From the NCBI RefSeq assembly GCF_022045235.1, contig NW_027266272.1, positions 4,340,001 to 4,404,000 of the forward strand: a stretch of DNA of 64,000 bases, given 5' to 3'. This document shows, piece after piece, positions 4,554 through 57,995 of this stretch (position 1 is its first letter; every line of letters begins with the position of its first letter). The translations under genes and the position numbers were made by a program. Source of the DNA: Haliotis cracherodii. Lineage: Eukaryota. The notes beneath the pieces were generated by a model. It had not been told where the DNA came from, ran no database searches, and saw only the letters and a program-made list of their open reading frames with translations.

Positions 4554-7002
4554 ATGGTCGTCATTGTAGCTGCCTGTGTCATCTTCGCCATTACTGGTTC
4601 TGCCTCTGCTGCAAGTAAGTGTTTCAAGCATCAGGTACTGTAAACCGTTAAAGACTCATTATGTAGATAAGTTACTGTTAAACAATCGTATACTTTGCAA
4701 TTTGTTAATGTTAATTTCCTGGTCCAGACGCGGAGTTAGAAAGATACTGTCATACAATGAATACATTACTTTAATTCAAATATGGAATAGAACCTGAAGA
4801 TTTGTTGTAACTTATATGGATATAATAATTTAATTTTAGAAACTCCTGCTTCTGTATTTTGCTATATGTATATAAGTTACTGTCATACAATGATATACTT
4901 TGCAACTTGTTTAGTTTGAACTACAATTTGTGGGAACTTAATTATGCTTCAGTATTTTGCAATATAATGGAACTTTTGTACAATGAGTAACTACATGGAC
5001 AAACACCATTAGGGGTCAGATTTGAAAAACGTCAACACAATTACAGCAGATTCTTTTATTTACCTAACTTTTATACTTCGTTGTTCCGTGGGGATCCCAA
5101 GTAACAACATAGATTCCCACAAACGTGTCGACTTGTTTGACAGTTTGTCATCTTACTCCAATAGCGTGGATCGATCCTCATGATGTCAATCACTGTATTG
5201 TCTGGTCCAGACGCGGCATTAAATAGTGGCTTTATATAAAACTGTACATGTGAATTGTCGACAAAACTGGAACTATACATCAGGTTATGTTGGTGTCAAC
5301 AGTATTAGAAATGATCAGTAAGTACATCCGTGACACTGTATGATGTTGACATCCTCAGCTCCCACCAACTGCACCATCTCTGGATGTGGGTTTGGAGGCA
5401 AATGTATCGACAATGCTGCTGGGACGGCGTCCACCTGCGTCTGCTACCAAGGATTCGAACTCAGCCTCCAGACATTCGAATGCATAGGTCAGTAACAATG
5501 ATCCTAATATTTAGAAAGACCCAACTAACCAAACTTATTCGCTTGTATATTGTAAGTGGCGACTCCGGTGGCCATACTAGGTGACCTGACTTGGTGGGTG
5601 TCATTGTACCTAAACTTCTGACAACAAGTGTTCTGCATTACCTAAACTCCAATGTTTATTAACGGTCGTGAATTACCTGGAATATTTGGAGCGTAAATAT
5701 AAAATGTCAACGAAAGAGAATTATATGAGCAGACCATTTTCCCCATTCTCGCGAATACCTGGTGTCATCACTGATTTGCAGCAATCCATTCGTTCAATTT
5801 TCACCACATTTTTGTCTTTAATCTGTCACGGGAGATACTCGATATTGAATATTCTCTTGTGTGGAAGCAGTAGTACCAGTGTGTCAGTGCATGTTTCTCT
5901 TCCAGACATCAACGAGTGTAACTACACCAGCGCCGCCCTGTGCCCTAACGGCTTCTGTCACAACATGTACGGCGACTACAAGTGCAACTGCTCCCGGGGC
6001 TTCGTGCCGCACTTCCCCGACGGAAAGACCTGCGTGCGACGTAAGTAACGAACGTCAGACCTCGTTAATCCGGACTATACCATGCTCAAGGAAATCGTCC
6101 GGATTAACGAAGCAATGAAATTCAAATTTCAGAATAGGGAATCTACTGGGGTTGCACTGTCTACAGGTGCAAGGGGACTGATGGACATATTCTTAAAGAC
6201 CCGATATCATTTTCCGAGACGAATCTCAAAGCTAGAAAGTAAAAAAAACATGACATACCTGCTAGAAGCACAGTCGTTGTATGATTCCGAATACATCATT
6301 AGCATATGTTTATCAATCACTATTATAGGGATTATGCTAGATGTTCATAAAAAGGTGGCACCCGTCACAAACACATGCAAAGGCATGTTCACCTGAAAAA
6401 AACAAGAGAACATAATTATGGTCAAAATAGTGAATTGCTTTTTTGTCACTGATGCGTCAAATTTGGAAATGTCTTCCACTTATCCACCAAAAAGCATTCT
6501 GAAAACTTGACAATGGCCCTGGACTTTGTCAACTTCAGCACACAACATTTGCGGAAGAGTTATAAGACGCTTGTTGAAATCGTAAAGATTAAACTGATGA
6601 TAAGGAACTCATCTAGCTTCTGGACAATGCTTGGGGGGATGGGGGGAGCAGGAGTCAGAAAAATACTTTCATGTTTGAACATGGAACATCAATCTGTGCC
6701 GCACAACGCCGGAAAACCAGGTTCGATTCCCGACATGGGTGCTACGTATGTCTTCAGCCCAAACTGAGTCTATGGCCTCGATATTGTTGGAATATTGCTT
6801 TATGTTGCGCCAAACTCAACATATCAACATCTCAAAACACATAGCTTGCAAATCGATGGCATATGATTCGTATGCTCACTATAAACGCCCTTCTGTTTCA
6901 GCTATATTCCCTTTCATCAACAACAACAACAACAATAACAACAACAACATCTTTGGCAACATGCCAATCTGGCTCTTGTCTTTGCTGTTTGGAGAGATGT
7001 AA
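4554..7002 (+). CDS. Secreted double-EGF protein with poly-Asn and hydrophobic tail, copy 1 (141 aa)
   Basis: Exons 4554-4614, 5359-5487, 5906-6040, 6902-7002. All introns are GT..AG and phase 1 (donors GTAAGT, GTCAGT, GTAAGT). Protein: MVVIVAACVIFAITGSASAA-TPTNCTISGCGFGGKCIDNAAGTASTCVCYQGFELSLQTFECI-DINECNYTSAALCPNGFCHNMYGDYKCNCSRGFVPHFPDGKTCVR-PIFPFI(N)10IFGNMPIWLLSLLFGEM. Two 6-Cys EGF modules; the second has the DINEC and C-x-N-x4-Y-x-C calcium-binding consensus. AATAAA at 7103-7108. Confidence 0.88.
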
Positions 7003-7102
7003 GAAGAGCAACATCTTAACAGTGTTCTAGTGTGTCCAAGTAGACAGCGAAGGATCGCAACACGTCTGGCAATGGATCCATAAAAACAAATGTACTGCAA
7101 TG

Positions 7103-7108
7103 AATAAA
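7103..7108 (+). terminator. Polyadenylation signal of EGF gene copy 1
   Basis: AATAAA about 100 nt after the stop. A matching TTTATT is present in both minus-strand paralogues (~11750, ~23869). Confidence 0.65.
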
Positions 7109-7185
7109 TATGAATGGCAGATTTAACGTTGTCTTTGTTTACTTTAAGTTTTTGAATGGCATTTAGAAGTCATGCACTTGGGAAC

Positions 7186-11855: not shown

Positions 11856-14380
11856 TTACATCTCTCTAAACAGCAAAGACAGGGCCCAGACTGGCAAGTT
11901 ACCAAAGATGTTGTTGTTATTGTTGTTGTTGTTGTTGTTGATGATAGGGAATATAGCTGAAACGGTAGGACATTCATAGTTAGCATACGAATCATACAAT
12001 GTCATCGAGTTGCAAGTTTATGTGTTTTGTTAGTGGATATGTCGGGTTTGGCGCCTCTTTCAGCAATATTCCAACACTATCGCGGCCTTGGACTCAGTTT
12101 GGGCAGAACACATAGCACCGATGTTGGGGCTCGAACCTGTCTTTTGGCGTGACGAGCCATCGCTTCAACAACTAGGCTGCCCAACGGCTCTATGTAAAAT
12201 GAAATTAAACATGTATGTACGACTCCTGCCCCAAATAAAGCACTCTCTTTCTTCTTTGTGTAGCGGCCATAAAACTTCCGAGTCCCGTGATGGGATTCGA
12301 ACCACGGACCTTCTGATCAGAGGTCGGACGCTTGTCCACATGACCAAAGAGGTTAACCCCGTCAGCAAGCTGACAAGGTAAGGATGTCATCTGTGGGATG
12401 ACTCCACGCCCTGCTACATACTCTCCCGTGAACCGAAGGCACGTCCCGGGCCGCATAGTAAGGTACTGAGGCTTATTTTGCTCAAATTTCATATGAACGT
12501 GCTCAGCCCCACGTTGGGCGCCAATGTAGCAGCCATAAAATTTCCGAGTCCCGTGATGGGATTCGAACCACGGACCTTCTCATCAGAGGTCGGACGCTTG
12601 TCCACATGACCGAAGAGGTTAACCCCGTCAGCAAGCTGACAAGGTAAGGATGTCATCTGTGGGATGCTACATTTGTACGTTAGAATCATCTGAGGAAAAG
12701 AGATCGGGTCGCTTAGTATTTTCTGTCAGCCACTACCCCACCCCACCAATATATCCTTACACTGGAACCCCGGTAGAATTTCTGGATTTCGAATTTCCTT
12801 GAGTCGGGATTAACCATGTTTACCGCGAGTCACTTACGTCGCACGCAGGTCTTTCCGTCGGGGTAGTGCGGCACGAAGCCCCGGGAGCAGTTGCACTTGT
12901 AGTCGCCGTATATGTTGTGACAGAAGCCGTTAGGGCACAGGGCGGCGCTGGTGTAGTTACACTCGTTGATGTCTGGAAGAGAAACATGCACTGACACACT
13001 GGTACTACTGCTTCCACACAAGAGAATATTCAATATCGAGTATCTGCCGACACAGAATCCATTGGTTGTAAAAGACAAAATAGTGGTTAAAATTATACGA
13101 ATGGATCACTGAAAATGAGTGATGACACCAGGTGTTCTCGAAAAGGATAAACATGTTCAACTCTGATAATTCTCTTTCCCTGACATTTCATATTTCCGCC
13201 CCAGTTAGCAATATTCCAATTAATTCACGGCAATAAATAAAAACTGGAGTTTAGACAACGAAGAAAGGTGTCTTTCAGCAGTTTGGGTACAATGACAAGC
13301 TCCAAGGTCACCTGGTATGACGACCCGAGTGACCTCTTAAACAACTGGAGTTGGAAACTTTCTTAATATTAGGATCATTGTTACTGACCTATGCATTCGA
13401 ATGTCTGGAAGCTGAGTTCGAATCCTTGGTAGCAGACGCAGGTGGACGCCGTCCCAGCAACATTGTCGATACATTTGCCTCCGAACCCACATCCAGAGAT
13501 GGTGCAGTTGGTGGGAGCTGAGGATGGCAACATCATACAGTGACACGGATGTACTTACTGATCATTTCTAATACTGTTGACACCAACATAACCTGATGTA
13601 TAGTTCCAGTTTTGTCGACAAGGACTCGTTTCTTTCAAATATCGAGATAAAGAAACACAGTTGTAATTCACATGTATAGTTTTATATATAGCCACTTTTT
13701 AATGCTGTGTGTGCACCAGACAATCCAGTGATTGACATCACGAGGATCGATCCACGCTATTGGAGTAAGATGGCAAGCTGTCAAACAAGTCGACACGTTT
13801 GTGGGAATCTATGTTGTTACTTGGGATCCCCACGGAACAACGAAGTATACAAGTTAGGTAAAGGAAAGAATCTGAGTAATTGTGTTGACGTTTTTCAAAT
13901 CTGACCCCTAATGGTGTTTGTCCATGTAGTTACTCATTGTACAAAAGTTCCATTATATTGCAAATACAGAAGCATAATTAAGTTCCCACAAATTGTAGTT
14001 CAAACTAAACAAGTTGCAAAGTATATCATTGTATGACAGTAACTTATATACATATAGCAGAATACAGAAGCAGGAGTTTCTAAATTTAAATTATTATATC
14101 CATATAAGTTACAACAAATCTTCAGGTTCTATTCCATATTCAAATTAAAGTAATGTATTCATTGTATGACAGTATCTTTCTAACGCCGCGTCTGGAAAAG
14201 GAAATCCAGTGATTGAAATTAACATTAAACAAATTGCAAAGTATACGATTGTATGGCAGTAACTTATCTACATAATGAGTCTTTAACGGTTTACAGTACC
14301 CGATGCTTGAAACACTTACTTGCAGCAGAGGCAGAACCAGTGATGGCGAAGATGACACAGGCAGCTACAATGACGACCAT
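11856..14380 (-). CDS. Secreted double-EGF protein, copy 2 (141 aa)
   Basis: Exons (minus) 14380-14320, 13517-13389, 12972-12838, 11956-11856. Same exon lengths as copy 1 (61/129/135/101) and intact splice sites. Tail PIFPII(N)10IFGNLPVWALSLLFREM, with mostly conservative substitutions relative to copy 1. Confidence 0.88.
12259..12671 (-). mobile_element. TRIM (miniature non-autonomous LTR retrotransposon) with tRNA-like sequence in both LTRs, Helenus-like
   Basis: LTRs 12525-12671 and 12259-12418, each bounded TGTAGC..GCTACA. PBS TGGCGCCCAACGTGGGGC (12506-12523, minus) is complementary to the tRNA-Lys(CTT) 3' end. Purine tract GGGAGAGTA precedes the 3' LTR. 4-bp TSD TTTG (12255-12258 / 12672-12675). 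A box (TGGTCATGTGG; CGGTCATGTGG in the 5' LTR) and B box GGTTCGAATCC lie inside the LTRs. Confidence 0.9.
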
Positions 14381-15873
14381 GGTGTCGGATGCTAAAGAAC
14401 TGAACAGCTGAGGTGTATTGGACGAGAATACTTGGCAAGACAAACTGACATGCTTTTATACCAAACACCACGATGCAAAAATGGAACAGCGTTAAAAACA
14501 ATCCCAAAGGCACGCGACGTTTAAATGACGTTTATGGACTTTTTTAATCGCTGACATAGGGGACTTTGGGTATATGTCACCTTGGACATGAAAAATATGT
14601 TCGGGTCGGGTTAAAAGAGATCGTGATAAGTTCATCGTCTCCGAGGTCATTTGCCACGCCAATATCACAGTGGTTGACCTGTGCGTGTGACATTGTTTAT
14701 TCTCACTGTGTTCAGTGTTGCATGACGGGCTGGTCAATGAGTAAGTGAGTGAGATTATTTTATTCAAGCCAAATCATTGTTGGTGTTGCACCCACAATAG
14801 GTCTATTCCGCTAATTTATTTTTCAAAGGTTGATTAAGTGCCCCAATTGATCCTCAACCAACTGAGTAGCTGACTGTGTGTAAATGTGCCTTGCGCAGTC
14901 TTCACAATATTCAAGTAATATCATTATGTTTATCAATATAATCCGTGCATGTAGTGGTCATATTTGGTTTGATCATAATAGGATAGGTTATATTTCTAAA
15001 GTAAATTATTATAAGCCGTCAGTACTGACATAAACTGAACGGCAAAAGAAAGCTTACACTTATGTCTGATGGTGGCTATAAATGAAATGATGTTTTTGAT
15101 AGGGGAATCGCAATTGTGTTTTGGACTATACATGTTTAAATTCTAAACATGTTTAGATTATGGGGATGTTGTGATTAGGTGGTGTTTAGGCAGTGAGACG
15201 ATAGCTCATTTCATGTGTTTAGACCCTAAATATGTTAGATAGAATACACTAAATGTGTTTTCCGTTTAGGACGTAAACATGTCTTGTATGCGTTAACATT
15301 CTATACAAATTATTACAGGGTACAATGCGTACTATAGCTGTAACGATGTGTTAAGCAATAAGTTAAAATTGAAACAAATAAACCCAACCAAACAATTTTT
15401 GTGTAAAAAATCAAATTTCTACTGTGAAATACAAGTGTTGATTGCAGCGACTACAGTAACGATATTGTTCCCTGATTGCATTTAAAAGATATACCTTCTA
15501 GTTGAAATAAAGTATTATTATGAGGGTTGATTTGACATGATATAAATAGCTTTTCTTTACACAGAGTATGAAGGATTTGGTAAACTTATGGCAACGGTCC
15601 GTATTTCTCATGTGGGTCCAACCGCAGGCATCATAGACTTGTGGGATACACATTTGTCCTCAATGAGGGGGCCGCTGAGGACAACGTCTGACGCCTCGGA
15701 AGGATGAACTCTTCACACATACACACGCCATTAAAACCACCTTTTTTGTCTCATAAATATGTGCCATCATAAAGAGATTATCACTAGATACCTTGTCATC
15801 GTGACCTTGACATACACCCTGAATGTCATTTGCATCAAAAGCTACAAAGGACTGGATGTTGAGGTGGAATCTC

Positions 15874-15885
15874 TATAAATATAAA
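15874..15885 (+). promoter_or_regulatory. TATA box of Gly-rich gene A
   Basis: TATAAATATAAA 88 bp upstream of the ATG. Identical in all six paralogues (27708-27719 +; 38089-38100, 45799-45810, 52508-52519, 58072-58083 on -). Confidence 0.75.
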
Positions 15886-15961
15886 GGAAGGCTGCTTCTT
15901 TCCATTAACCATCCTGACTCTCACACAGAACGGTTCTGCTCGCAACTTTCTTGCTTCAACC

Positions 15962-18347
15962 ATGAATTCTTCAGTTTTGATTGTTGTCCTTGTCGCCGTC
16001 TTTGCGGCAACAGCGTCAGCTCAAGGTAAATATATATTAGCATTTAAGTTGTTTAATAGGTGTAAAATGCATGGGAATGTGTACTGCATTCTGATTGGGG
16101 AAGAACTGTTGGATCTTATAAATCTTTCGAACTTTTCAGAGCGTATGAATATTTTTTCTTGATGCATATCTATTTCCTGAATCCCATTTTTGAAAGAAAA
16201 CGCTATGGTTGAACAATAATTGTACGAAGAACTTCGATTTTGTCCAAATTCTTCTGTCAGACGGTGAAAGGTGAAAGGTGACTATGCTTGTCGTAAAAGG
16301 CGACTAACGGGATCGGGTGGTCAGGCTCGCTGACTTGGTTGATGCATGTCATCGATCCCAATTGCGTGGATTGTCTGGTCCAGACTCGATTATTTACAGA
16401 CCGCCATCATATAGCTGGAATATTGCTGAGTGCGGCGTTAAACAACAAACCAACCAACCAATTTCCAGACTGACGTCATAACTGCGTCACCGCTGCGAGA
16501 TCTCATATCGGGCCCTGGGGAAAATTACGTGTGACTGTTTTACTTTACAATGTCCATAATTATTGAGTGTTAAATGCATCGAATACTGAGTGAGTGAGTT
16601 GGGGTTAACGCCGCTTTTAACAGTATTCCAGTCATATCACGGCGTGTGAGGTTAATGTGGGAGGAAAGCCCGAAGTGATGCAGGTCTCAGACGTTTACCA
16701 CTTCGGTGAAACCCACGAGCACGGGTAAGGTGCTGACAAACCTAGAAACATAATCGGGGCGAAGCGGGATTTCGAACCCACAATCATAGGTTTCTGGCGT
16801 GCCCAAGGGACGCAAATCTGCACAGCGAATCGCGGCGCCTTAGACGACTGGGCCGCCCGTGCCCCCCATCGCATACTGAATAACACCCGCTAATATGAAA
16901 ACACATAATGATTATGTCCTAATTTGACTTGTAAAGGTGAAGATCCGGGGTAGAATAGGTCTTCAGCAATCAAAGCTTGTTGTAGGAGGTGACTAACTGG
17001 ATCGGGTGGTCAGGCTCGCAGGCTTGGTTGATGCATTTCATCGTATCCCAATTGCGTGTATCGATGCTCATGATGTCAATCACTGGATTGTCTGGTCCAG
17101 AGTCGATTATTTATAGAAGGCCGTCATATAGCTGGAATATTGCTGAGTGCGACTTGAAACAACAAACAAACAAGATAGCTGTAAGTGGCATTTGATCACA
17201 CTAATTCACTGTACGTTGATGGTGATATGGCTCAAATACTGCCGATACGACTATTAATTTAACTCACTCACTCATGTTCACGATGACGTTATTAACCATG
17301 TGGTACTGGCTGGTGTTTCTGTTTGGCTGTTTCTGTCAGTAATGTCAAGTAGTTCCTGTTTAATCTAGGACATTGTGGTGGCAGAAGGGTATCAGGTTCT
17401 TCAACTGGGTTCAAATCTCCCATTATGATCCCTGGTCTATCGTCACAATACCAGTGTTGTGGATTTAATCAAGGACTAAAACGTCTCCAGCTGACATGAC
17501 ATTGAGTTTTCCTCACACTCATCCTACTGTGATTTATATGAATTTCTGTTACAGGACTTGGAGCACTGCTGGCCTTGAGTGGAGGTTTGGGTGGTGCGGG
17601 TAGCCCGTTTGGTGGCGCAGGTGGACCAGGTGGCGCAGGTGGCGCTGGCGGGATGGGAGGGATGTTTGGCAATTCAGGTAATCATAGGGGTTATACATAG
17701 AAGTAATAGAACGATTCTCAAAGACAGGAAGAGCTGAAGTAACACATGACAATAGAATTTCTTCTGCACATGGCGCCTAACACAGCAAAACTAACAACCT
17801 GTGTTTAGTATACAATGGCGCTAAAATTAGCACGATACTGAAAACCTCGTTTTAAGATTAAGCCGAGTTTGGATTGTGCGCTCGTTGACGACCTCTAAAT
17901 TTAGCAATTACATTTGTACAGGGGTACTGCATGGAAGAACAGTACAGCTCCGATCTAACATCAATGGGCGTGATATATTCATCTAGAAAAAGTACTTCCC
18001 CACCACTTCATTATTTTTATACATCGAGAACATGCAACTATCCATCCAGGACATTAACTTTATTTCGAGAAATGGCTAAGGTACCTGCTGCGAGGTCACA
18101 TCAGTGACTTCCAAGAGAGAAAGCAATTGAAAAGAGTATCGACACAGCTACCATCATGTCGTTAGCTCATCGCCTTCGCTTTCTATAATGTGTATTTCAC
18201 ATTGTACTAAAAAAAAAAAAAAAATTTCGTGACAAAACTGTACAGGATATATTTTAACGTATCGTGTTCACTTTGCATGTGACAGGTCTCAGCCAACAGC
18301 TGCTTCAATGCCGACTCCTGAGCCGAATCTTCCCGATGGAAATGTGA
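15962..18347 (+). CDS. Small secreted glycine-rich protein, copy A (82 aa)
   Basis: Exons 15962-16025, 17555-17677, 18286-18347 with phase-1 GT..AG introns. Protein: MNSSVLIVVLVAVFAATASAQ-GLGALLALSGGLGGAGSPFGGAGGPGGAGGAGGMGGMFGNS-GLSQQLLQCRLLSRIFPMEM. AATAAA at 18434-18439. Confidence 0.88.
16274..16461 (+). mobile_element. SINE-like element, family 1, 5'-truncated, in intron 1 of gene A
   Basis: Family-1 body with a (CAAC)n tail. Absent from paralogue B. Confidence 0.8.
16590..16866 (-). mobile_element. tRNA-Leu-derived SINE (family 2)
   Basis: Head GGCCCAGTCGTCTAAGGCGCC..GTGGGTTCGAAATCCC resembles tRNA-Leu D and T arms. (ACTC)n tail. TSD CATCG(A/C)ATACTGA at 16577-16589 / 16867-16879. Confidence 0.85.
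16937..17172 (+). mobile_element. SINE-like element, family 1
   Basis: GTGAAGATCCGGGGTAGAATAGGTCTTCAGC head through to an AACAAACAAAC tail. Confidence 0.8.
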
Positions 18348-23974: not shown

Positions 23975-26123
23975 TTACATCTCTCTAAACAGCAAAGACA
24001 GGACCCAGACTGGCAAGTTACCAAAGATGTTGTTGTTGTTATTGTTGTTGTTGTTGTTGTTGATGATAGGGAATATAGCTGAAACAGTAGGACATTCATA
24101 GTTAGCATACGAATCATACAATGTCATCGAGTTGCAAGTTTATGTGTTTTGTTAGTGGATATGTTGGGTTTGGCGCCTCTTTAAGCAATATTCCAACACT
24201 ATCGCGGCCTTGGACTCAGTTTGGGCAGAACACATAGCACCGATGTGGGGGATCGAACCTGTCTTTTGGCGTGACGAGCCATCGCTTCAACAACTAGGCT
24301 GCCCAATAACCGCTCTATGTAAAATGAAATTAAATGTGTATGTACGACTCCTGTCCGTTAGAATCATCTGAGGAAAAGAGATCGGGTCGCTTAGTATTTT
24401 CTGTCAGCCACTACCCCTACCCACCAATATATCCTTACAGTGAAACCCTGGTAGAATTTCTGGATTTCGAATTTCCTTGAGTCGGGATTAACCATGTTTA
24501 CTGCAAGTCACTTACGTCGCACGCAGGTCTTTCCGTCGGGGTAGTGCGGCACGAAGCCCGGGTAGCAGTTGCACTTGTAGTCGCCGTACATGTTGTAGCA
24601 GTAGCCGTTTCTGCACAAGGCGGCGCTGGTGTAGTTACACTCGTTGATGTCTGGAAGAGAAACATAACAATTATACGACTGGATAACTGAAAATGAGTGA
24701 TGACACCAGGTGTTCTCGAAAAGGATAAAATGTTCTACTCTGATAATTCTCTTTCCCTGACGACCGCCTCCGTGGTCTAGTGGTAGAGCGTCCGTCCGGA
24801 GAGCGAAGGTCCGGAGTTCGATCCCCGGCCGCGTAATATCAAAAGACGTTAAAAGATGGTACCTGTTATTACCCTGTCTGGCGCTCGGCATTAAGAGGCT
24901 AAAACAAGGACTGGTCGGCTCGGAGTCACTATACTGTGTCTGATTGGGGTATTCATGTTAAACTGCGGCATGGTATCTCAGTGGGCTAGCACTATAAATC
25001 GGCATCAGTCCGGTCTAGTACAAGCAGCCACACAAACACACACGTGCATGCACGTCGCTATATAAGTGCAATAATCTTGGAGGCGACGTAAAACCCCATT
25101 TCACCTCACCTCACTCTTTCCCTGACATTTCATATTTCCGCCCCAGTTAGCAATATTCCAATTAATTCACGGCAATGAATAAAAACTGGAGATTAGACAA
25201 CGCAGAAAGGTGTCTGTCAGCAGTTTGGGTACAATGACACGCTCCAAGGTCACCTGGTATGACGACCCGAGTGACCTCTTAAACAACTGGAGTTGGAAAC
25301 TTTCTGAATATTAGGATCATTGTTACTGACCTATGCATTCGAATGTCTGGAAGCTGAGTTCGAATCCTTGGTAGCAGACGCAGGTGGACGCCGTCCCAGC
25401 AGCATTGTCGATACATTTGCCTCCGAACCCACATCCAGAGATGGTGCAGTTGGTGGGAGCTGAGGATGGCAACATCATACAGTGACACGGATGTACTTAC
25501 TGATCATTTCTAATACTGCTGACACCAACATAACCTGATGTATAGTTCCAGTTTTGTCGACAAGGACTCGTTTCTTTCAAATATCGAGATAAAGAAACAC
25601 AGTTGTAATTCACATCTACAGTTTTATACATAGCCACTATTTTTATGCCGCGTCTGCAACAGACGTTCATGTAGTTACTCATTGTACAAAAGTTCCATTA
25701 TTTTGCAAAATACAGAAGCATAATTAAGTTCCCACAAACTGGAGTTCAAACTAAACAAGTTGCAAAGTATATCATTGTATGACAGTAACTTATATACATA
25801 TAGCAGAATACAGAAGCAGGAGTTTCTAAAATTAAATTGTTATATCCATATAAGTTACAACAAATCTTCAGGTTCTATTCCATATTTAAAAAGTAATGTA
25901 TTCATTGTATGACAGTGTCTTTCTAACGCCGCGTCTGGACCAGGGAATCCAGTTATTGAACTTAACATTAAACGAATTGCAAAGTATACGATTGTTTAAC
26001 AGTAACTTATCTACATAACGAGTCTTTAACGGTTTCCAGTACCTGATGCTTGAAACACTTACTTGCAGCAGAGGCTGAACCAGTGATGGCGAAGATGACA
26101 CAGGCAGCTACAATGACGACCAT
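23975..26123 (-). CDS. Secreted double-EGF protein, copy 3 (142 aa)
   Basis: Exons (minus) 26123-26063, 25459-25331, 24650-24516, 24078-23975. EGF2 is DINECNYTSAALCRNGYCYNMYGDYKCNCYPGFVPHYPDGKTCVR. Tail PIFPII(N)11IFGNLPVWVLSLLFREM. Confidence 0.88.
24762..25113 (+). mobile_element. Full-length tRNA-derived SINE (Meta/MESC-like core) in intron 2 of EGF copy 3
   Basis: A box TGGTCTAGTGG, B box GAGTTCGATCC, core AAAGACGTTAAAAGATGGTACCTG..TGGCGCTCGGCATTAAG, (CACCT)n tail. 13-bp TSD CTCTTTCCCTGAC (24749-24761 / 25114-25126). Empty site in copy 2 at ~13172-13184. Superfamily name is from recall. Confidence 0.9.
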
Positions 26124-27795: not shown

Positions 27796-29451
27796 ATGAA
27801 TTCTTCAGTTTTGATTGTTGTCCTTGTCGCCGTCTTTGCCGCAACAGCGTCAGCTCAAGGTAAATATATATTAGCATTTAAGTTGTATTATTAATAGGTG
27901 TAAAATGCATGGAAATGTGTACTGCATTCTGATTGGGGAAGAACTGTTGGATATTATAAATCTTTCGAACTTTTCAGAGCGTATGAATATTTTTTCTTGA
28001 GGCGTTTATATTTTCTGAATCCCATTTTTGAAAGAAAACGCTTCATTCGGTTTGCCACAATGGGTACCACACTGATAAATATGGTTGAACAATAATTGTA
28101 AGAAGAACTTCGATTTTAGTTGCCTTTGTCCACATTCTTCTGTCAGACGGGTTATAAGAGAACCATTATGATGTTGTCCATTTTATCGTATTATTTTATT
28201 ACGTATGACTGTTTTACTTTACAATGTCCATAATTATGGAGTGTTAAATGCATCGAATACTGAGTGAGTGAGTTGGGGTTAACGCCGCTTTTAACAATAT
28301 TCCAGTTATATCACGGCGTGTCAGCTTAATGTGGGAGGAAAGCCCGAAGTGATGCAGGTCATGTGGTACTGACAGGTGTTTCTGTATGGCTGTTTCTGTC
28401 AATTACGTCAAGTGGTTCCTGTTTAACCTAGGACATTGCGGTGGCAGAGTGATATCAGGTCCTTCCACGTCCAGTTCCGGGTTCAAATCTCCCATTATGA
28501 TCCCTGGTCTATCGTCACAATACCAGTGTTGTGGATTTAATCAAGGACTAAAACGTCTCCAGCTGACATGACATTGAGTTTTCCTCACACTCATCCTGCT
28601 GTGATTTATCTGAATTTCCAAACAACGTTAAACCATACCACTCACTCACTGACTGAACTTCTGTTACAGGACTTGGAGCACTGCTGGCCTTGAGTGGAGG
28701 TTTGGGTGGTGCGGGTAGCCCGTTTGGTGGCGCAGGTGGACCAGGTGGCGCTGGCGGTATGGGAGGAATGTTTGGCAATTCAGGTAATCATAGGGGTTGT
28801 ACATAAAAGCAATAGAACGAATCTCAAAGACAGGAAGAGCTGAAGTAACACATGACAATATAATTTTTTTTCTGTACATGGCGCCTAACACAGCAAAACT
28901 AACAACTTGTGTTTAGTATACAATGGCACTACAATGAGCACGATACTGAAAACCTCGTTTTAAGATTAAGCCGAGCTTGGATTGTGCGCTCGATGACGAC
29001 CTCTAAATTTAGCAGTTACATTTACAGGAGTACTGCATGGAAGAACAGTACAGCTCCTATCACATCGATGGGCGTGATATATTCATCTAGAAAAAGTACT
29101 TCCCCACCCCTTCATTATTTTTATATATCGAGAACTTGCAACTATCCATCCAGGACATTAACTTTATTTCGAGAAATGGCTAAGTTACCTGCTGCGAGGT
29201 CACATCAGTGACTTCCAAGAGAGAAATCAATTGAAAAGAGTCTCGACAATGCTACGATCAGGTCGTTAGCTCGTCGCCTTCGCTTTCTATATGTGTATTT
29301 CACATTGTACTAAGAAAAAACAAATAATTTTCGTGACAAAAATGTACAGGATATATTTTAACGTATCGTGTTCACTTTGTATCTGACAGGTCTCAGCCAA
29401 CAGCTGCTTCAATGCCGACTCCTGAGCCGAATCTTCCCGATGGAAATGTGA
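27796..29451 (+). CDS. Small secreted glycine-rich protein, copy B (79 aa)
   Basis: Exons 27796-27859, 28670-28783, 29390-29451. One GGA triplet fewer than copy A. Splice sites intact. Confidence 0.88.
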
Positions 29452-35733: not shown

Positions 35734-38012
35734 TCACATTTCCATCGGGAAGATTCGGCTCAGGAGTCGGCATTGCATCAGCTGTCGGCCGAGACCTGTC
35801 AAACGCAGAGTGAGGTAAGTTAGATAGGACCCTTCAAAGCGCAGACACACTACATGATACAGATGGCATGTTGGAGGAAAGGTAATACTACCCTGTATTT
35901 TGTGTAAATAATGGTTTATTTAAGGACCATTGCAATATAAAAAATATCTCTTTGTAATATGATGTAGAATATTAAATTAATTCATATGAAACAAGGTTGT
36001 TCGAATGCCTATGAGGAGTGGGTGTAGCCATTAGACAGCTGGGAAGAAGTCATATATTATTGTTTAAAACCATGTATTTACTTCCTGACGTAAAGTATGA
36101 AGTAACATACCGATATTGAAATCTAGAAGTCGAATTCGATTTTATAACATGTTTTAGAGCTGTTTCATAGCAACAGTTATTTTATCCTGTCTCAGTTGCT
36201 TCCTCTGCCACATGTGATATGACCTAGTAGCAGGTACTGGTGGTAAGACAGTTCTTGGAATGAAGTTAATGTTATGAGTGGATATTTCCAAGTTCTCGGA
36301 AAATGAAAGTAAAGACTGGATGGGAAACTACTTTTATCAAAATACATTTATCCCCCCGGTCGATATTAGATAGAAGCTGTCCTATTCGTTCTTGCGATAA
36401 TATAATAACTTTATTTAGAGGTAGTCATCAAGCGTTAATTCCATTTGCTGCTTAATCCTAAATCAAAGTTTACCGTATTGTGCTTTGTTTAACGCCATTG
36501 TACTTTGTTAAACACAGTTTGATTTGTAAAGGTGTCAGGTACAGAAAAGGAATTCCATTCTGACGTATGTAGGTGTTTCTTGAGTTCTTCAAGCCTTTGG
36601 GCATCGCTATATTGCTTCCATTAAGAACCCTCATAAGTACCTGAATTGCCCAACAGTCCTCCCATCCCGCCAGCGCCACCTGCGCCACCAAACGGGCTAC
36701 CCGCACCACCCAAACCTCCACTCAAGGCCAGCAGTGCTCCAAGTCCTGAAACAGATGGGAGAAGTTCATGCAGTGAGAGAGTGGTATTGGTTAAAGTTAT
36801 TTTGAAATTCAGCAGCAGGATGTGTGTGAGGAAAACTCTATGTCATGTCAGCTGGAGACGTTTTAGCCCTTGATTAAATCCACACTAGTACTGTTACGAC
36901 AGACCAAGGATCATAATGGGAGTTTTGAACCCGGACATGGCAGGGAAGGACCTAATACCACTCTGCCACCAAAGGCAGGAACTATTTGAAATAACTTAAA
37001 GCATTTCCCGATTATATCACTTGCGTAACAGAGTGATAGAAACACCAGCCATTACAACAGGGTTTGTAAAATACTGTTTCTGGCACCCGTTGTTCTAAAA
37101 CATTGATACATTTTCGACACTAAGTTCCATGAATTATCGGGAACATAAAATGCATGTACAGGGATTGAGAAAAAAGTATTCACACGCAGTCCAATGTCCA
37201 AAAGATTTCATATTTTTTCCAACAATCACATTGCTGTCACACTCCTATGCATGTTACAGTTATTAGTAATGCAATCTGAAACACTGGTACATATTTACCT
37301 TGAGCTGACGCTGTTGCAGCAAAAACAGGAACTACTTGACATAATTGACAGAAACAGCCATACAGAAACACCAGCCAGTACCACATGGTTAATTACGTCA
37401 TAGTTAACATGAGTGAGTGAGTTAAAATTTATAGTCATATCAGCAGTATTTCAGCTGTGCTAGGACTCGTCAATATGATATACATGTAATGTAGCGTGTG
37501 TGAGTGTGGTTAAATGCTCCTTTCACATATCTTAAACTTTACAAGTCACTGACATTGAAAATTAGGAGATAAACATTATGCATGAATACTCAATGAAACC
37601 CGCAAATCTAAACACATTCTGTTTATTGGGGCATTGTAAAATACAAAAGTTATCAGTATTTTTCCCTAGCGTCCCTCCCTACGTGAACTGTCGCAGTTCA
37701 ATGACGTCACTCTGCAATGGTTTGGCGTCATGATAAATGAATTTCATGTGCTTCTGTTTATCTACATCGAAGTTCTTCTTACAAATATTAATTAAACTTA
37801 ATGTAGCATTAGTGTGGTATTGTACCAAACAGAATGGTACGTTGTCGTTGAAAAAGGTTACGCATCAAGAATAAGTATTCATACGCAATGACATTGCAGC
37901 ACACACTCCCATGCATTTTACAGCCCTTAAATGCTAATATATATTTACCTTGAGCTGACGCTGTTGCAGCAAAGACGGCGACAAGGACAACAATCAAAAC
38001 TGAAGAATTCAT
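35734..38012 (-). CDS. Small secreted glycine-rich protein, copy C (76 aa; chimeric, divergent 3' half)
   Basis: Exons (minus) 38012-37949, 36745-36641, 35795-35734. Protein after the signal peptide: GLGALLALSGGLGGAGSPFGGAGGAGGMGGLLGNS-GLGRQLMQCRLLSRIFPMEM. Intron 2 is strongly diverged from the other copies while the exons are conserved. Confidence 0.8.
37299..37323 (-). pseudogene. Orphan 3' fragment of Gly-rich gene exon 1
   Basis: TTTGCTGCAACAGCGTCAGCTCAAG followed by the donor GTAAAT, located inside intron 1 of copy C. Confidence 0.8.
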
Positions 38013-50718: not shown

Positions 50719-52431
50719 TCACATTTCCATCGGGAAGATTCGGCTCAGGAGTCGGCATTGAAGCAGCTGTTGGCTGAGACCTGTCAGATACAAAGTGAAC
50801 AAGATACGTTAAAATATATCCTGTACATTTTTGTCACGAAAATTATTTGTGTTTTTAGTACAATGTGAAATACACATACAGAAAGCGAAGGCGATGACCT
50901 GATGGTAGCTGTGTCGATACTCTTTTCAATTGCTTTCTCTCTTGGAAGTCACGTGATGTGACCTAGTAACAGGCTACCGTAGCCATTTCTCGAAATAAAG
51001 TTAATGTCCTGGATGGATAGTTGCAAGTTCTTGATATATAATAATAATGAAATGGTGGTGAAGTACTTTTTCTAGATGAATATATCACGCCCATCGATGT
51101 TAGATGGGAACTGGACTGTTCTGTCATGCAGTACTCCTGTACAAATGTAATTGTTAAATTTAGAGGTAGTCAACGAGCGCACAATCCAAGCTCGGCTTAA
51201 TCCTAAAACGAGGTTTTTAGTATCGTGCTAATTTTAGCGCCATTGTATACTAAACACAGGTTGTTAGTTTTGCTGTGTTAGGCGCCATATGCAGAAGACA
51301 TTCTATTGTCATGTGTTACTTCAGCTCTTCCTGTCTTTGAGAATCGTTCTATTGCTTCTATGTACAACCCCCATGATTACCTGAATTGCCAAACAGTCCT
51401 CCCATCCCGCCAGCGCCACCTGCACCACCTGCGCCACCAAACGGGCTACCCGCACCACCCAAACCTCCACTCAAGGCCAGCAGTGCTCCAAGTCCTGTAA
51501 CAGAAGTTCAGTCAGTGAGTGAGTGGTATGGTTTCACGTTGTTTGGAAATTCATATAAATCACAGCAGGATACGTGTGAGGAAAACTCAATGTCATGTCA
51601 GCTGGAGACGTTATGGTCCTTGATTAAATCCACAACACTGGTATTGTGACGATAGACCAGGGATCATAATGGGAGATTTGAACCTGGAAATGGCAGTTGA
51701 AGGACCGATACCACTCTGCCACCAAAATGTCCTAGGTTAAACAGGAACTAATTGACATAATTGACAGAAACAGCCATACAGAAACACCAGCCAGTACCAC
51801 ATGGTTAATTACGTCAAAGTTAACATGAGTGAGTGAGTTAAAATTTAAAGTCATATCAGCAGTATTTCAGCTGTGCTAGGACTCGTCAATATGATATACA
51901 TGTAATGTAGTGTGTGTGAGTGTGGTTAAATGCTCCTTTCACATATCTTAAACTTTACAAGTCACTGACATTGAAAATTAGGAGATAAACATTATGCATG
52001 AATACTCAATGAAACCCACAAATCTAAACACATTCTGTTTATTGGGGCATTGTATAATACAGAAGTTATCAGTATTTTCCCGTACGTGAAAACTGTAACA
52101 GTTTAATGACGTCACTCTGCAATGGTTTGGCGTCATGATAAAATAATTTCATGAGTTTCTGTTTATCTACATTGAAGTTCTTCTTACAAATATTAATTAA
52201 ACTTAATGTAGTATTAGTGTGGTATTGTGCCAAACAGAATGGTACGTTGTCGTTGAAAAAGGTTACGCATCAAGAATAAGAATTCACACACAATGACATT
52301 GCAGCACACACTCCCATGCATTTTACAGCCGTATAGTAATACAACCTTAATGCTAATATATATTTACCTTGAGCTGACGCTGTTGCAGCAAAGACGGCGA
52401 CAAGGACAACAATCAAAACTGAAGAATTCAT
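50719..52431 (-). CDS. Small secreted glycine-rich protein, copy E (79 aa)
   Basis: Exons (minus) 52431-52368, 51494-51381, 50780-50719. (GGA)3, intact. Confidence 0.88.
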
Positions 52432-54019
52432 GGTTGAAGCAAGAAAGTTGCGAACAGAACCGTTCTGTGCGAGAGTCAGGATGGTTAATGGAAAGAAGCA
52501 GCCTTCCTTTATATTTATAGAGATTCCTCCTCAACATCCAGTCCTTTGTAGCTTTTGATGCAAATGACATTCAGGGTGTATTACAAGGTCACAATGACAA
52601 GGTATCTAGTGATAATCTCTTTATGATGGCACATATTTATGAGACAAAGAGAAAGTGGTTTTAATGGCGCGTGTATGTGTGAAGAGTTCATCTTTCGGAG
52701 GCGTTGGACGTTGTCCTTAGGCGACCCCCTTATGAGGACAAATGGATTTTATCCCACAAGTGAACGGTTTAAGTTGATATAACTTGTACCAAAACTTTCT
52801 TACTCTGTGTAAATAAAACATTTTTAAATCAAACCAAATCTACCCTAATAAGGTATATCATTCAAATGCAATAAGTGAACAACATCGTTATTGTTTTCGC
52901 AGCAGGCAATACTTGAATTTCAAAGAAAGAAATTTGGATTGCTTAAAATATTTGTATCTTATTTTTAGCTACAGTTTTACATCTCTATGTATTTATGGCA
53001 ATTGGGAAATGTTTAGGTCGGATGTGTGCATATACACTGAAACCTCTTTAATCCGGACACTACGTTCTGAGTGAAATCGTCCGGATCAATAAATGTCCGG
53101 ATTAACGAATCCTGGGTATGTATGCCCATTACTTGCATGCTGACGTTCCCAACTTTGATGGTTTAGGGGAACTAACGGGGTCCGGGCTAACGAGGGTTCA
53201 TTGTATACACATATAGTCATAATCTACCTACCATGTAGGTAGAAATGTAATGCATGTATACATATGTCACTAGATTGAATCTGCAGTTACTTCTTATGGT
53301 TATGAAAATGAACCTTGTCGCTTGTCCAGTCTTCATCAGTGTTCATCACTGGGGATATCAGATCAAAAGATAGTAGTGTAAAACACCGTCCGTATGCCTA
53401 AATTGTCCTATGTGTCGTTTTGAAAGAGTTAAATTAGTTTCGATGGTTCTAACATCTTCTCAGCCAATCACTGCAAACATTCACGAAACACTCAATAATG
53501 TGTGTTTGCTAACTTTCCCATCCCCATCTTCTATTTGCAGGTCCCTGTAAAGCCTCTGCTGCAGCCGAACTTTCTCCAGCCACAGTCTCTCGTTCTGCGC
53601 GGCACAGTGATTTTAAACCCATAATCAAAATATATATACGACATTTTATGCAAAAACGATGGGACGCTCAGATCGATGTCACTACAACGAAAGAAATTCA
53701 ACCAAATGTCGGTCATACCTGCAACACAACCACGGCAAACCGTGGCATTACGTAAGCTATATTTACGGTTAAACAATCAGTGTGTGCTGTTCGCATAAAT
53801 ATGTGAATATCACGCTTATCCACATTGTGAATATTAAAAAGTTCGCCATCATATTTATTGAAAATGTGACATAGCGTTAATAACTCATTGTGAGTACGGT
53901 TTTACGCTGCTTTTAGCAATAATGTATTATCAGGACGGGGGCAACAGAAACGTGTTTTACTCATTTTGTCCATGTTCGCAATGAAATCCCATATGCTACA
54001 CGACTGCTATAACGGCTTG

Positions 54020-55040
54020 GCTACCCGAAATATACATGATTTATTACGACTGGCAGTCAGGATCAAAGTAACGGGTGGTATTTGATACCCGAAATATTCC
54101 TGATGGATCACGACTGGCAGTCAGGATCAAAGTAACGGGTGGTATTTGATGCCCGAAATATTCAAGATTCATTCTGACTGGCAGTCAGGATAAGAGTAGC
54201 CGTGATATTTGATACCCGAAATATACAGGATTGTTTACGACTGGCAGTCAGTATAAGAGTAACAGGGATATTTGATACCCGAAATATACAGGATTTTTTA
54301 CGACTGGCAGTCAGGATAAGAGTAACGGGTGATATTTGATACCCGAAATATGCAGAATTGTTTACGACTGGCAGTCAGGATAAGAGTAACGGGTGATATT
54401 TGATACCCGAAATATACAGGATTTCTTTCGACTGGCAGTCAGGATAAGAGTAACGGGGATATTTGATACCCGAAATATACAGGATTTTTTCGCAATGAAA
54501 TCCAACATTAACGGCTTGGCTACCCGAAATATACAGGATTTATTACGACTGGCAGTCAGGATCAAAGTAACAGGTGGTATTTGATGCCCGAAATATTCCT
54601 GATTGATCACGACTGGCAGTCAGGATCAAAGTAACGGGTGGTATTTGTTGCCCGAAATATTCAAGATTCATTCTGACTGGCAGTCAGGATAAGAGTATTG
54701 GGGATATTTGATACCCGAAATATACAAGATTCATTCTGACTGGCAGTCAGGATAAGAGTAGCCGTGATATTTGATACCCGAAATATACAGGATTTTTTAC
54801 GACTGGCAGTCAGTATAAGAGTAACAGGGATATTTGATACCCGAAATATACAGGATTTTTTACGACTGGCAGTCAGGATAAGAGTAACGGGGATATTTGA
54901 TACCCGAAATATACAGGATTTTTTTACGACTGGCAGTCAGGATAAGAGTAACGGGGATATTTGATACCCGAAATATACAGAATTGTTTACGACTGGCAGT
55001 CAGGATCAGACTAACGAATGATATTTGATACCCGAAATAT
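54020..55040. repeat. 63-64-bp minisatellite (~16 units)
   Basis: Paralogue of 47315-49650, with one marker unit at ~54491. Confidence 0.96.
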
Positions 55041-56103
55041 ACTATGTGTAGTTACAGTGGCACTGAACATTACACTACCTTTAGACTTCCGGGTGTCTCT
55101 AGCATAAGATTGGCACAACTTAACCGGAACTGTTCAAATCTGTATTTAGGAAAGTATTTCACCAATGCCTACTTGATACCATGCAAGTATAAACATTTCT
55201 TGAATGTCATATCTTGAGTCACAAGATTACCTTTCTTTTCGCTACTTTTCTGTAAATCCTAAACGTACATTGCTTCAAAGTAACAATGCTAGTTGCTAAG
55301 AGTGATTTCGTACTAAACACTGGAAACAATTACATTAAGTATTGATATTTCCGGACTATCGGGCGACCAGGTGGTTAAAGATATGGACAATTTACTACTT
55401 TCACCACAAGCAGAACACAGTTAGGTGCATGGGTCATGCTAAAAATGCAGTGTGTGTTGAATGTGTTCATGTAACATTGTTTAGTAACTGTTGAAAATGT
55501 TAATATTTTGTATTTCTGCAATAGTATTTTATTACAGCAGCTCTTGTTGGACTCAAGTTGGACAGCAAGACCATGGTGTGTTCTTGTGGAGACCGGAGCA
55601 AGGGCGGCCCAGGGGTTTAAAGCACTACACGTCACTGATGTTGAGTGTGTTCCATGTCTGCCGGTGCCCGATGATCGCAGGTACAAGTACCAGATTCGCC
55701 CTGATTATGTTCCATGGTTTTGTCAGCACCTTACACGTGCTTGTTGGTTTGACAAAACGATAAACGTCAAAGTCGTGTGTCAGTTTAGCCTTTCCTCATA
55801 CGTTATGCCGAAGAACTGAACCAGACCAGATACAATGAACAACATTCACGCCGTCGGTTTTCCAAGATACGCAGTCTACCAAGTCATGGAGCCTGACCAC
55901 CCGATCTATTGAGTCGCCTCGTACGGCAGGCATAGTTGTTGGGAATCACTTCTAACTTTCCCCATAAAAGAGAATAAAGAGCAAACACACCAGTTGTTAT
56001 TGAATACCTTGTTTATTGATAAATGATTAATCAATTGTACATGTTTGACAATTTGTGATGAATGATTGCCATTGCAGTATTTCCAGAATTCCCATGGACA
56101 CCT

Positions 56104-57995
56104 TCACATTTCCATCGGGAAGATTCGGCTCAGGAGTCGGCATTGAAGCAGCTGTTGGCTGAGACCTGTCAGATACAAAGTGAACAAGATACGTTAAAAT
56201 ATATCCTGTACATTTTTGTCACGAAAATTATTTGTGTTTTTAGTACAATGTGAAATACACATATAGAAAGCGAAGGCGATGAGCTTACGACCTGATGGTA
56301 GCTGTGTCGATACTCTTTTCAATTGCTTTCTCTCTTGGAAGTCACGTGATGTGACCTAGTAACAGGCTACTGTAGTCATTTCTCGAAATAAAGTTAATGT
56401 CCTGGATGGATAGTTGCGAGTTCTTGATATATAATAATAATGAAATGGTGGGGAAGTACTTTTTCTAGATGAATATATCACGCCCATCGATGTTAGATGG
56501 GAACTGTACTGCTCTGTCATGCAGTACTCCTGTACAAATGTAATTGTTAAATTTAGAGGTAGTCAACGAGCGCACAATCCAAGCTCGGCTTAATCCTAAA
56601 ACGAGGTTTTTAGTATCGTGCTAATTTTAGCGCCATTGTATACTAAACACAGGTTGTTAGTTTTGCTGTGTTAGGCGCCATGTGCAGAAGACATTCTATT
56701 GTCATGTGTTACTTCAGCTCTTCCTGTCTTTGAGAATCGTTCTATTGCTTCTATGTACAACCCCTATGATTACCTGAATTGCCAAACAGTCCTCCCATCC
56801 CGCCAGCGCCACCTGCACCACCTGCGCCACCAAACGGGCTACCCGCACCACCCAAACCTCCACTCAAGGCCAGCAGTGCTCCAAGTCCTGTAACAGAAGT
56901 TCATGCAGTGAGTGAGTGGTATGGTTTAACGTTGTTTGGAAATTCATATAAATCACAGCAGGATACGTGTAAGGAAAACTCAATGTCATGTCAGCTGCCC
57001 AGAGACGTTATGGTCCTTGATTAAATCCACAACACTGGTATTGTGACAATAGACCAGGGATCATAATGGGAGATTTGAACCCGGAACTTGCAGTTGAAGG
57101 ACCGATACCACTCTACCACCACAATGTTCTAGGTTAAACAGGAACTACGTGACATAATTGACAGAAACAGCCAAACAGAAACACCAGCCAGTACCACATG
57201 GTTAATTAGTTGGTTGGTTGGTTGGTTAGTTGTTTAACGCCGCACTCAGCAATATTCCAGCTATATGACGGCGGTCTGTAAATAATCGAGTCTGGACCAG
57301 ACATTCCAGTGAGTAATATCATGAGCATCGATCCACACAATTGGATCAATGACATGCATCAACCAAGTCAGCGAGCCTGACCACCTTATCCCGTGAGTCG
57401 CCTTTTACGACAAGCATAGTCGCCTTTTACAGCAAGCATGGGTTGCTGAAGACCTATTCTACCCCAGATCTCCACGGGTCTTACTTCATCGTGAACATGA
57501 GTGCGTGAGTTTAAATTTAAAGTCAAATCGGCAGTATTTCAGCTGTGCTAGGACTCGTCAATATGATATACATGTAATGTAGGGTGTGTGAGTGTGGTTA
57601 AATGCTCCTTTCACATATCTTAAACTTAACAAGTCACTGACATTGAAAATTAGGAGATAAAGATTATGCGTGAATACTCAATGAAACCCACAAATCTAAA
57701 CACATTCTGTTTATTGGGGCATTGCATAATACAAAAGTTATCAGTATTTTTCCGTAGTGCTCTCTCCCTACGTGAACTGTCGCAGTTCAATGACGACACT
57801 CTACAATGCCTTGGCGTCATGATAAAAAAGATAAAAAGAAAAAGTATTCACACGCAATGACATTGCAGCACACACACCCATGCATTTTACAGCCGTATAG
57901 TAATACAACCTTAATGCTTATATATATTTACCTTGAGCTGACGCTGTTGCAGCAAAGACGGCGACAAGGACAACAATCAAAATCGATGAATTCAT
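56104..57995 (-). CDS. Small secreted glycine-rich protein, copy F (79 aa)
   Basis: Exons (minus) 57995-57932, 56887-56774, 56165-56104. Starts MNSSILIV, (GGA)3, intact. Confidence 0.88.
57209..57480 (-). mobile_element. SINE-like element, family 1, full length, in intron 1 of copy F
   Basis: Starts GACCCGTGGAGATCTGGGGTAGAATAGGTCTTCAGC and ends in (CAAC)n. Flanked by TTA on both sides. Empty site GGTTAATTACGTC in copies C, D and E. Confidence 0.9.

Follow-up and report, generated by a model that had tools for sequence, protein, structure and literature searches.

Two families of small secreted-protein genes in the black abalone, partly in head-to-head pairs, and the likeness of their C-terminal ends

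The window analysed here, a 64,000-nucleotide stretch of the black abalone Haliotis cracherodii genome (C9:4.34-4.40 Mb, C9 being a piece of black abalone chromosome), carries nine small genes of two families, one coding for proteins with two epidermal growth factor (EGF)-like domains (EGF1 to EGF3) and the other for short glycine-rich peptides (Gly1 to Gly6). Our results make it probable that these are two unrelated, co-expressed and abalone-restricted families of secreted proteins, recently amplified, partly as head-to-head pairs. An earlier note, made from the sequence alone, had suggested that the similar last residues of the two families are a shared sorting or self-assembly tag. That suggestion found no support, since local alignment of the two tails is no better than that of shuffled sequences, the motif is eroded outside the window and the tails differ in their physical character.

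Gene models, head-to-head pairs and transcripts

Gene models were built by scanning the window in six frames for the C-terminal ends, reading the DNA around them and joining the exons by script. The scan gave nine stop-terminated ends in EM, three of EGF type and six of Gly type, and all nine genes are intact, with GT..AG introns that are every one in phase 1. EGF genes (n=3) have four exons and code for 141-142 amino acids, and Gly genes (n=6) have three exons and code for 76-82 (Table 1). Exon 1 of the EGF genes codes for a signal peptide of 20 residues ending in GSASAA, exon 2 for an EGF-like module and exon 3 for a module beginning D-I-N-E-C, one exon per domain, while exon 4 reads P-I-F-P-[FI]-I, 10-11 Asn and then IFGN-[ML]P[IV]W-[LAV]LSLLF[GR]EM, so that only a Cys-free tail of 33 residues follows the EGF pair. 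EGF1, for instance, runs from signal peptide through EGF-like domain, calcium-binding EGF domain and ten Asn to IFGNMPIWLLSLLFGEM and the stop. In the Gly genes, exon 1 codes for the signal peptide MNSS[VI]LIVVLVAVFAATASAQ, exon 2 for GLGALLALSGGLGGAGSPFGG-(AGG/PGG)n-MGG[ML][FL]GNS and exon 3 for G-L[SG][QR]QL[LM]QCRLLSRIFPMEM, which gives the tail pattern (GGA)n-GGMGG-[ML][FL]GN-SG-L[SG][QR]QL[LM]QCR-LLSRIFPMEM before the stop. The most divergent copy of the window is Gly3, with LLGN and the tail LGRQLMQCRLLSRIFPMEM, and Gly6 has a TATAAATA box about 85 bp upstream of its ATG. The assembly gap upstream of Gly3 lies outside all exons and introns, so that none of the reading frames extends over it. 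The block next to the promoter that is common to Gly3, Gly4 and Gly5 stops at 38300.

These models agree with much of what the earlier note had read from the DNA. All nine terminal exons lie where it had placed them, the tail patterns of both families match literally in every model, and the Ser codon of the motif is TCT in one family and AGC in the other, as claimed. As the hFGN element (h, hydrophobic) belongs to the last exon in EGF genes and to the penultimate exon in Gly genes, the intron is placed differently relative to the motif in the two families.

Two of the EGF genes, EGF2 and EGF3, stand head to head with Gly1 and Gly2, and the blocks 13920-14943 and 25665-26686, as well as 14943-16204 and 26791-28042, are about 93% identical. 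The EGF/Gly head-to-head pair was thus duplicated whole, as a unit, at an identity of about 92-93%. Gly3 to Gly6 form a one-directional array. A minisatellite with a 63/64-bp period is found 1-1.6 kb downstream of the stops of Gly1, Gly2, Gly3, Gly5 and Gly6 and moves with the duplication unit. Together, the models and the two pairs bear out the description of the locus as a cluster in which two families of small secreted proteins lie together.

Transcription and splicing are seen in both families, since contigs from two small RNA-like runs of a sister species (X19 and X20, whose RNA status is backed only by such spliced contigs) span the junctions of EGF3 and Gly2. The EGF3 junctions 24650>25331 and 25459>26063 are both spanned by an 854-nt X19 contig, in which blocks 24516-24650, 25331-25459 and 26063-26222 are joined, and by an X20 contig. 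The Gly2 junctions 27859>28670 and 28783>29390 are present in spliced contigs of X19/X20; the blocks of a 310-nt contig (...27857/28668-28780/29387-29490) are cut at offsets that put the junctions on GT..AG sites, and the Gly2 contigs carry a 9-nt GCAGGTGGA insertion, that is, one additional AGG unit. These contigs, with the RefSeq match of the EGF models, confirm the predicted junctions to the terminal exons, and the expected co-expression agrees with the fact that the same two runs contain both families, where contig depth cannot rank EGF against Gly expression. In the three RNA-like runs of H. cracherodii itself, only repeats were found at the window.

Interspersed repeats at 24650-25210 (EGF3 intron 2), 26705-26890 (EGF3/Gly2 intergenic region) and 28261-28360 (Gly2 intron 1) match thousands of contigs in all four RNA-like runs, with a summed depth of up to 5e5. 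They are highly transcribed short interspersed element (SINE)/transposable element families and no part of the EGF3 and Gly2 genes.

The pairs, the array and the occurrence of both families in the same runs fit the idea that a single cell type makes both as co-regulated secretory products. The two genes of a pair would share regulatory DNA, and the same cells could secrete both products, either to their surface or into an extracellular layer. The EGF protein, whose Asn run is prone to slippage, may be held at the membrane through its hydrophobic end, a glycosylphosphatidylinositol (GPI)-type signal being one option, or that end may simply be sticky. For the Gly peptide, self-association by way of its greasy segment is conceivable, as is a dimer joined by a disulfide at its only Cys. 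By pure conjecture, the products could have a role in shell, periostracum, mucus or adhesive material.

Table 1. Genes and other features of the window and its relatives. Positions without a prefix are those of the window; C9 and C56 are pieces of the genome assembly.
Feature	Position	Strand	Details
EGF1	4554..7002	+	exons 4554-4614, 5359-5487, 5906-6040, 6902-7002; 141 aa
EGF2	11856..14380	-	exons 14380-14320, 13517-13389, 12972-12838, 11956-11856; 141 aa; tail IFGNLPVWALSLLFREM, stop
EGF3	23975..26123	-	exons 26123-26063, 25459-25331, 24650-24516, 24078-23975; 142 aa; tail N11-IFGNLPVWVLSLLFREM, stop
EGF4	C56:26041035-26044056	-	older fourth EGF gene, intact; end RQIPISNI-N7-IFNSIPSWLWPFLLRGEM, stop
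Gly1	15962..18347	+	exons 15962-16025, 17555-17677, 18286-18347; 82 aa; head to head with EGF2
Gly2	27796..29451	+	exons 27796-27859, 28670-28783, 29390-29451; 79 aa; head to head with EGF3
Gly3	35734..38012	-	exons 38012-37949, 36745-36641, 35795-35734; 76 aa
Gly4	43920..45722	-	exons 45722-45659, 44700-44578, 43981-43920; 82 aa
Gly5	50719..52431	-	exons 52431-52368, 51494-51381, 50780-50719; 79 aa
Gly6	56104..57995	-	exons 57995-57932, 56887-56774, 56165-56104; 79 aa
Gly7	C9:4409656-4412648	-	78 aa, divergent; signal peptide MKFSLVFVALLVVFASTASAQ, tail GLTQQLLQCRLLSRIFPLEA, stop
EGF-type ends, six-frame scan	6976-7002; 11856-11882; 23975-24001	+; -; -
Gly-type ends, six-frame scan	18318; 29422; 35734; 43920; 50719; 56104	+; +; -; -; -; -
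Divergent intergenic region EGF2/Gly1	14381..15961		1.58 kb between start codons
Divergent intergenic region EGF3/Gly2	26124-27795		1.67 kb; duplicate of EGF2/Gly1 region
23-bp element, EGF genes	~4284-4307; 14623-14646; 26366-26389	+; -; -
23-bp element, Gly genes	~15694-15716; 27529-27550; 38246-38266; 45970-45992; 52679-52701; 58243-58265	+; +; -; -; -; -
63/64-bp minisatellite	19419-19813; 30534-31309; 33858-34121; 47315-49652; 54022-55042		4-37 copies
Tandem array, period 42	1-1289		31 copies; ends just before first N gap
Tandem array, period 49	39674-40063		8 copies; between second N gap and Gly4
Tandem array, period 21	40953-41933		47 copies; between second N gap and Gly4
Assembly gap (N)	38718..39007		intergenic, 706 bp upstream of Gly3 ATG (38012)

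Relatives, annotation and selection

Exon-level DNA and protein searches of the 1.18-Gb genome found the Gly exon confined to the C9 cluster, and the EGF exons in that cluster and once more on C56. Examination of 220 kb of flanking DNA around the loci revealed Gly7, whose stop lies about 5.7 kb and whose start about 8.6 kb past the right end of the window, with a TATA box of its own. Its signal peptide and Gly-rich part are about 59% identical to those of Gly1-6, and its tail QQLLQCRLLSRIFP has been retained through many synonymous changes, with EA instead of EM as final residues. The gene on C56, EGF4, has a type of tail shared with H. rufescens XP_046357577.2 and H. asinina XP_067685327.1, and no Gly gene was found in the approximately 7 kb examined upstream of it. 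A tree built from the EGF domains groups the cluster-type EGF genes in a derived clade with support of 100/99; the tree was midpoint-rooted, which makes this direction of change likely, short of proof.

Comparison of the window genes with these outside copies shows that both products are under purifying selection. Between EGF1-3 and EGF4, the proportion of synonymous differences (pS) is about 0.55, and that of nonsynonymous differences (pN) rises from 0.03-0.04 in the EGF domains to 0.15 in the signal peptide and to 0.27 in the tail. Between Gly1-6 and Gly7, pS is 0.64, and pN amounts to 0.12-0.18 for the tail, 0.13-0.17 for the Gly-rich part and 0.20-0.22 for the signal peptide. The tail is consequently the best-kept part of the Gly peptide and the least-kept part of the EGF protein, in which it evolves faster than the signal peptide of the same protein.

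The calcium-binding signature DINEC...CxNxxGxYxCxC can be read in the EGF models. Against Pfam EGF_CA (PF07645; cut-off 27), exon 3 by itself reaches 34.7 bits and the full-length database proteins P0017 and P0002 of the family 31-32 bits, and EGF2 exceeds the Pfam cut-offs for both cEGF (32.2 bits) and EGF_CA (31 bits). Exon 2 alone has the six Cys and reaches 14-17 bits, below the cut-offs of PF00008 and of cEGF (PF12662), whereas the full protein scores 32-38 bits against cEGF (cut-off 26.6), with a stretch at residues 46-67 reaching across the end of the first module. An AlphaFold2 model of EGF2 from a 5-row alignment had a mean predicted local distance difference test score (pLDDT) of 42.5, too poor for use.

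The cluster had been described as unannotated, which seems correct for the Gly family but not for the EGF family, for which RefSeq models exist. Our EGF2 is identical to XP_071101881.1, while EGF1 and EGF3 correspond to the C-terminal 141 and 142 residues of XP_071101880.1 and XP_071101883.1. In these two RefSeq uses an upstream in-frame ATG (4491-4553 for EGF1; 26124-26186, minus strand, for EGF3) that adds 21 residues before the signal peptide. Neither EGF2 nor any orthologue in H. rufescens or H. asinina has this ATG, and the conserved start is therefore the one reading MVVIV. The RefSeq names are 'uromodulin-like' and 'protein delta homolog 1-like' in H. cracherodii, and 'fibrillin-1-like X3', 'LTBP-1/3-like' and 'C1q receptor-like' for the orthologues in H. 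rufescens and H. asinina. These names are automatic and rest on the calcium-binding EGF (cbEGF) domain alone; with uromodulin, fibrillin and LTBP, the proteins of this family, 141-163 residues long, have nothing else in common. A HMMER search with EGF exon 2 against 1.84 billion representatives returned a 141-residue Haliotis asinina protein, the relatives of which include the three H. cracherodii RefSeq proteins (EGF1-3), and the searches made gave no relative of the family outside Haliotis.

A poly-Asn match about 146 kb to the right was tried as an EGF relative and rejected, since it came from reading a Thr-rich, mucin-like repeat in the wrong frame. The gene concerned (C9:4485780-4490100, minus strand) combines two modules, one EGF and one cbEGF (the latter about 42% identical to exon 3), with a long mucin-like repeat rich in Thr and Pro; this repeat is made of ACA/AAC codons and reads as poly-Asn in an alternative frame. 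The tail exon of the EGF family, read in the +1 frame, gives poly-Thr and a Cys-rich end.

The Gly protein consists of a signal peptide, a greasy Gly/Ala/Leu-rich stretch and a conserved amphipathic end of 20 residues with one Cys. The mature peptide of about 55-61 residues has two Arg, one Glu and one Cys, with no Lys, Tyr or Asp, and judging from this composition it is unlikely to bind calcium. A precursor of neuropeptides or of a cationic antimicrobial peptide was considered and dismissed, as there are no Lys-Arg or Arg-Arg sites and the charges are two Arg and one Glu. The exon 2 frames of Gly4 and Gly7 had no match in a collection of 15 billion proteins, a size at which true Gly copies would reach E values of 1e-5 to 1e-11 according to a local phmmer control. 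A protein atlas queried with Gly exon 2 gave no usable match, and Pfam had nothing on the Gly exon or on the tail of either family, while the Pfam family Egg_lysin was matched above its cut-off in another part of the genome. The Gly family thus looks unannotated and undescribed.

The C-terminal ends of the two families

When the last 33 and 36 residues of the two families were aligned locally (BLOSUM62) and compared with composition-preserving shuffles, p was 0.05-0.3, and above 0.7 for EGF4, and the likeness is limited to the last nine residues of the window members. Outside the window the tails read WLWPFLLRGEM in EGF4, FLWPYILGEL in H. asinina and RIFPLEA in Gly7, so that the motif is partly gone in EGF4 and Gly7, as it is in the EGF-family database proteins P0019 and P0002. 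Over eight EGF-family proteins of three species, the invariant residues of the tail are two Asn, one Pro and the penultimate Glu, and its L-S and F belong to the cluster-type genes only. The two tails also differ physically: that of the EGF family is hydrophobic (mean Eisenberg H 0.30-0.66), and that of the Gly family has a mean of about 0.04, with an amphipathic core (hydrophobic moment 0.59) and two Arg.

Genome-wide, the pattern coding for CRLLSRIFP occurs exactly 7 times and the pattern coding for NNIF[GN][NS]hPxW exactly 4 times, with none of either in the reversed controls; as these 7 and 4 occurrences are the family members themselves, neither tail is shared beyond its own family. A shared tag is also argued against by a scan with two degenerate patterns for LLS-x-h-F-x(1,2)-EM and a stop, which gave 15 and 14 matches against 5 and 4 in reversed controls, only a modest excess. 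Matches outside the cluster that were examined (C3, C5 and C9:7.1 Mb) turned out to be unrelated open reading frames. Among the sequences matching the loose pattern are three tandem copies on C5 (34.50-34.55 Mb, minus strand), each with an open frame of at least 70 residues ending in SLAYGFLTGIFYEM and a stop, which have no visible relation to the EGF or Gly family. In the literature, no papers were found on the tail strings or the six XP accessions, and supplements on silk-like proteins held none of the tail strings. In the proposed check against mollusc shell proteomes, no tail string was found in the H. laevigata shell-proteome supplements (6.2 M characters, possibly incomplete, and from a different species), and the main text of that paper does not contain the word EGF.

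The tails could be alike through old homology, if a single gene with a signal peptide and a tail had received phase 1-1 EGF or Gly exons by exon shuffling. All introns are indeed in phase 1, the signal-peptide exons stop one base past codon 20 or 21, the signal peptides have similar ends (SASAA and TASAQ) and EGF and Gly genes are neighbours. Phase-1 introns after signal peptides are, however, common among secreted-protein genes, which counts against this origin. When 5' regions (400 bp and exon 1) and 3' regions (last exon and 250 bp) were compared by Smith-Waterman alignment, the families proved unrelated, with signal exon, promoter, tail exon and 3' flank no better than shuffles as DNA or as protein, except for one 23-bp element (p ~0.04). 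Moreover, the Gly intron falls between FGNS and GLSQQ while the EGF intron lies upstream of the Asn run, and the oldest members have the weakest motif. We consider an old common origin very unlikely.

Some of our results weigh against the view that the two families are unrelated neighbours whose ends resemble each other superficially. The first is the 23-bp element (CCTCsGA, 2-4 bases, GATGAACT, 2-3 bases, TCAC), which lies 254-270 bp upstream of the ATG in 9/9 window genes, in gene orientation. It is a candidate shared regulatory site, for which the alignment is weak and the equal distance striking, and it is absent upstream of EGF4 and Gly7. Its equal spacing hints that the linkage of the families is perhaps more than accidental. 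Second, when 9-mers were anchored at the end and at most one gap was allowed, window members shared 5-6 identities, which 0.04-0.9% of shuffles reached, in a test that was post hoc and built around a motif already noticed; EGF4 had 2-3 identities (P 0.2-0.6). Third, the penultimate Glu is present in 8/8 EGF-family proteins and 7/7 Gly genes. In addition, that X19 and X20 are RNA is a tool's guess, supported by the spliced contigs alone, and the GPI option for the EGF protein is weak, given a hydrophobic stretch of 8-13 residues and Asn as the one candidate at omega+2.

The end-anchored identity (P ~0.0004-0.009) and the penultimate Glu are also what would be expected of a convergent short C-terminal signal, made of two hydrophobic residues, 1-2 spacers, a Glu and a hydrophobic last residue, that would co-pack the two products in granules or co-assemble them outside the cell. 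C-terminal helices sort prohormone convertases and carboxypeptidase E to granules, which offers an analogy. Such a signal would further agree with the head-to-head pairs, with the finding of both families in the same runs and with the fact that the motif is strongest precisely in the EGF copies that adjoin Gly genes. Nonetheless, the likeness comes from the post hoc test while the local alignment is not significant, and it joins tails unlike in physical character. EGF4-type proteins lack the L-S and the F although their EGF domains are equally strongly selected, Gly7 ends in EA, neither tail occurs in any other gene of the genome, and the looser genome pattern is only modestly above its control, its extra matches being unrelated open reading frames. 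A convergent signal therefore seems unlikely to us. A stronger version, in which the cluster EGF genes landed beside the Gly genes and convergently gained a Gly-type end, so that the products share a bidirectional promoter, co-sort and co-assemble, we regard as improbable.

The EGF tail may alternatively be a GPI-attachment signal, with an omega site in the Asn run or in a Ser/Thr/Asn-rich linker and a mature protein that is lipid-anchored apically, in which case the Gly tail would have another role. All eight proteins from the three species show the succession of signal peptide, polar flexible linker and C-terminal hydrophobic stretch, and the tail evolves fast (pN 0.27) with its composition kept, as would a signal that is removed. 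On the other hand, the hydrophobic stretch is only 8-13 residues long and weak in EGF4 (mean Kyte-Doolittle 0.15), charged residues come close to the end ([GR]E[ML] after the hydrophobic stretch), the omega+2 candidates are by eye only Asn or Ser, and the invariant Pro and penultimate Glu would be needless in a removed signal. We hold such an anchor to be somewhat doubtful. Overall, the two families are best read as unrelated neighbours, and the likeness of their tails is real as strings but shallow and derived, with no evidence of a common module. A caution follows for studies of this kind, as the striking C-terminal signature of one window dissolves once outside paralogues and orthologues are included.

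Comparison with known systems

Abalone genomes contain many lineage-specific arrays of small secreted proteins, whose roles may lie in shell, mucus, adhesion or defence. The present locus contributes a family of seven peptide genes absent from protein databases. Its physical pairing with a two-EGF protein, and the occurrence of both in the same two RNA-like runs, make the two a candidate pair for an extracellular material.

Among shell-matrix proteins, the molluscan EGFZP and EGFL genes are likewise organized in tandem or inverted arrays, EGFZP having a transmembrane domain, and in gastropods only EGFZP was found (Shimizu et al. 2022, PMC9290575). The EGF family of H. cracherodii shares with their N-terminal part a signal exon followed by two EGF exons, and shares as well the array arrangement and a hydrophobic C-terminal element. 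However, EGFZP/EGFL proteins contain a ZP or ZP-like region with eight Cys, and the EGF family has neither (no ZP in Pfam); its hydrophobic stretch is also too short for a transmembrane helix such as that of EGFZP. Without the ZP region, the EGF family is not a member of the EGFZP/EGFL family.

For the Gly peptide, the closest comparison, given as a lead only, is with scallop abductin and the hydrophobic domains of tropoelastin. Like them, it is rich in Gly, Ala, Leu, Met and Phe and almost uncharged, and it has GGMGG-hFG and GLGALLA-type motifs and a Cys-bearing C-terminal end. No elastomer protein matched it in any search made, and it differs from these elastomers in having one short imperfect (GGA)n-GGMGG block in place of long Gly-rich arrays, and no Lys or Tyr for the cross-links that elastomers form. 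The association of Gly genes with a cbEGF gene, in the genome and in expression, is nevertheless a loose parallel to that of elastin with fibrillin, and if the cluster EGF genes had indeed gained a Gly-type end by which the paired products co-assemble, improbable as we find it, these products would be a mollusc secretion's minimal equivalent, with two components, of fibrillin plus elastin.

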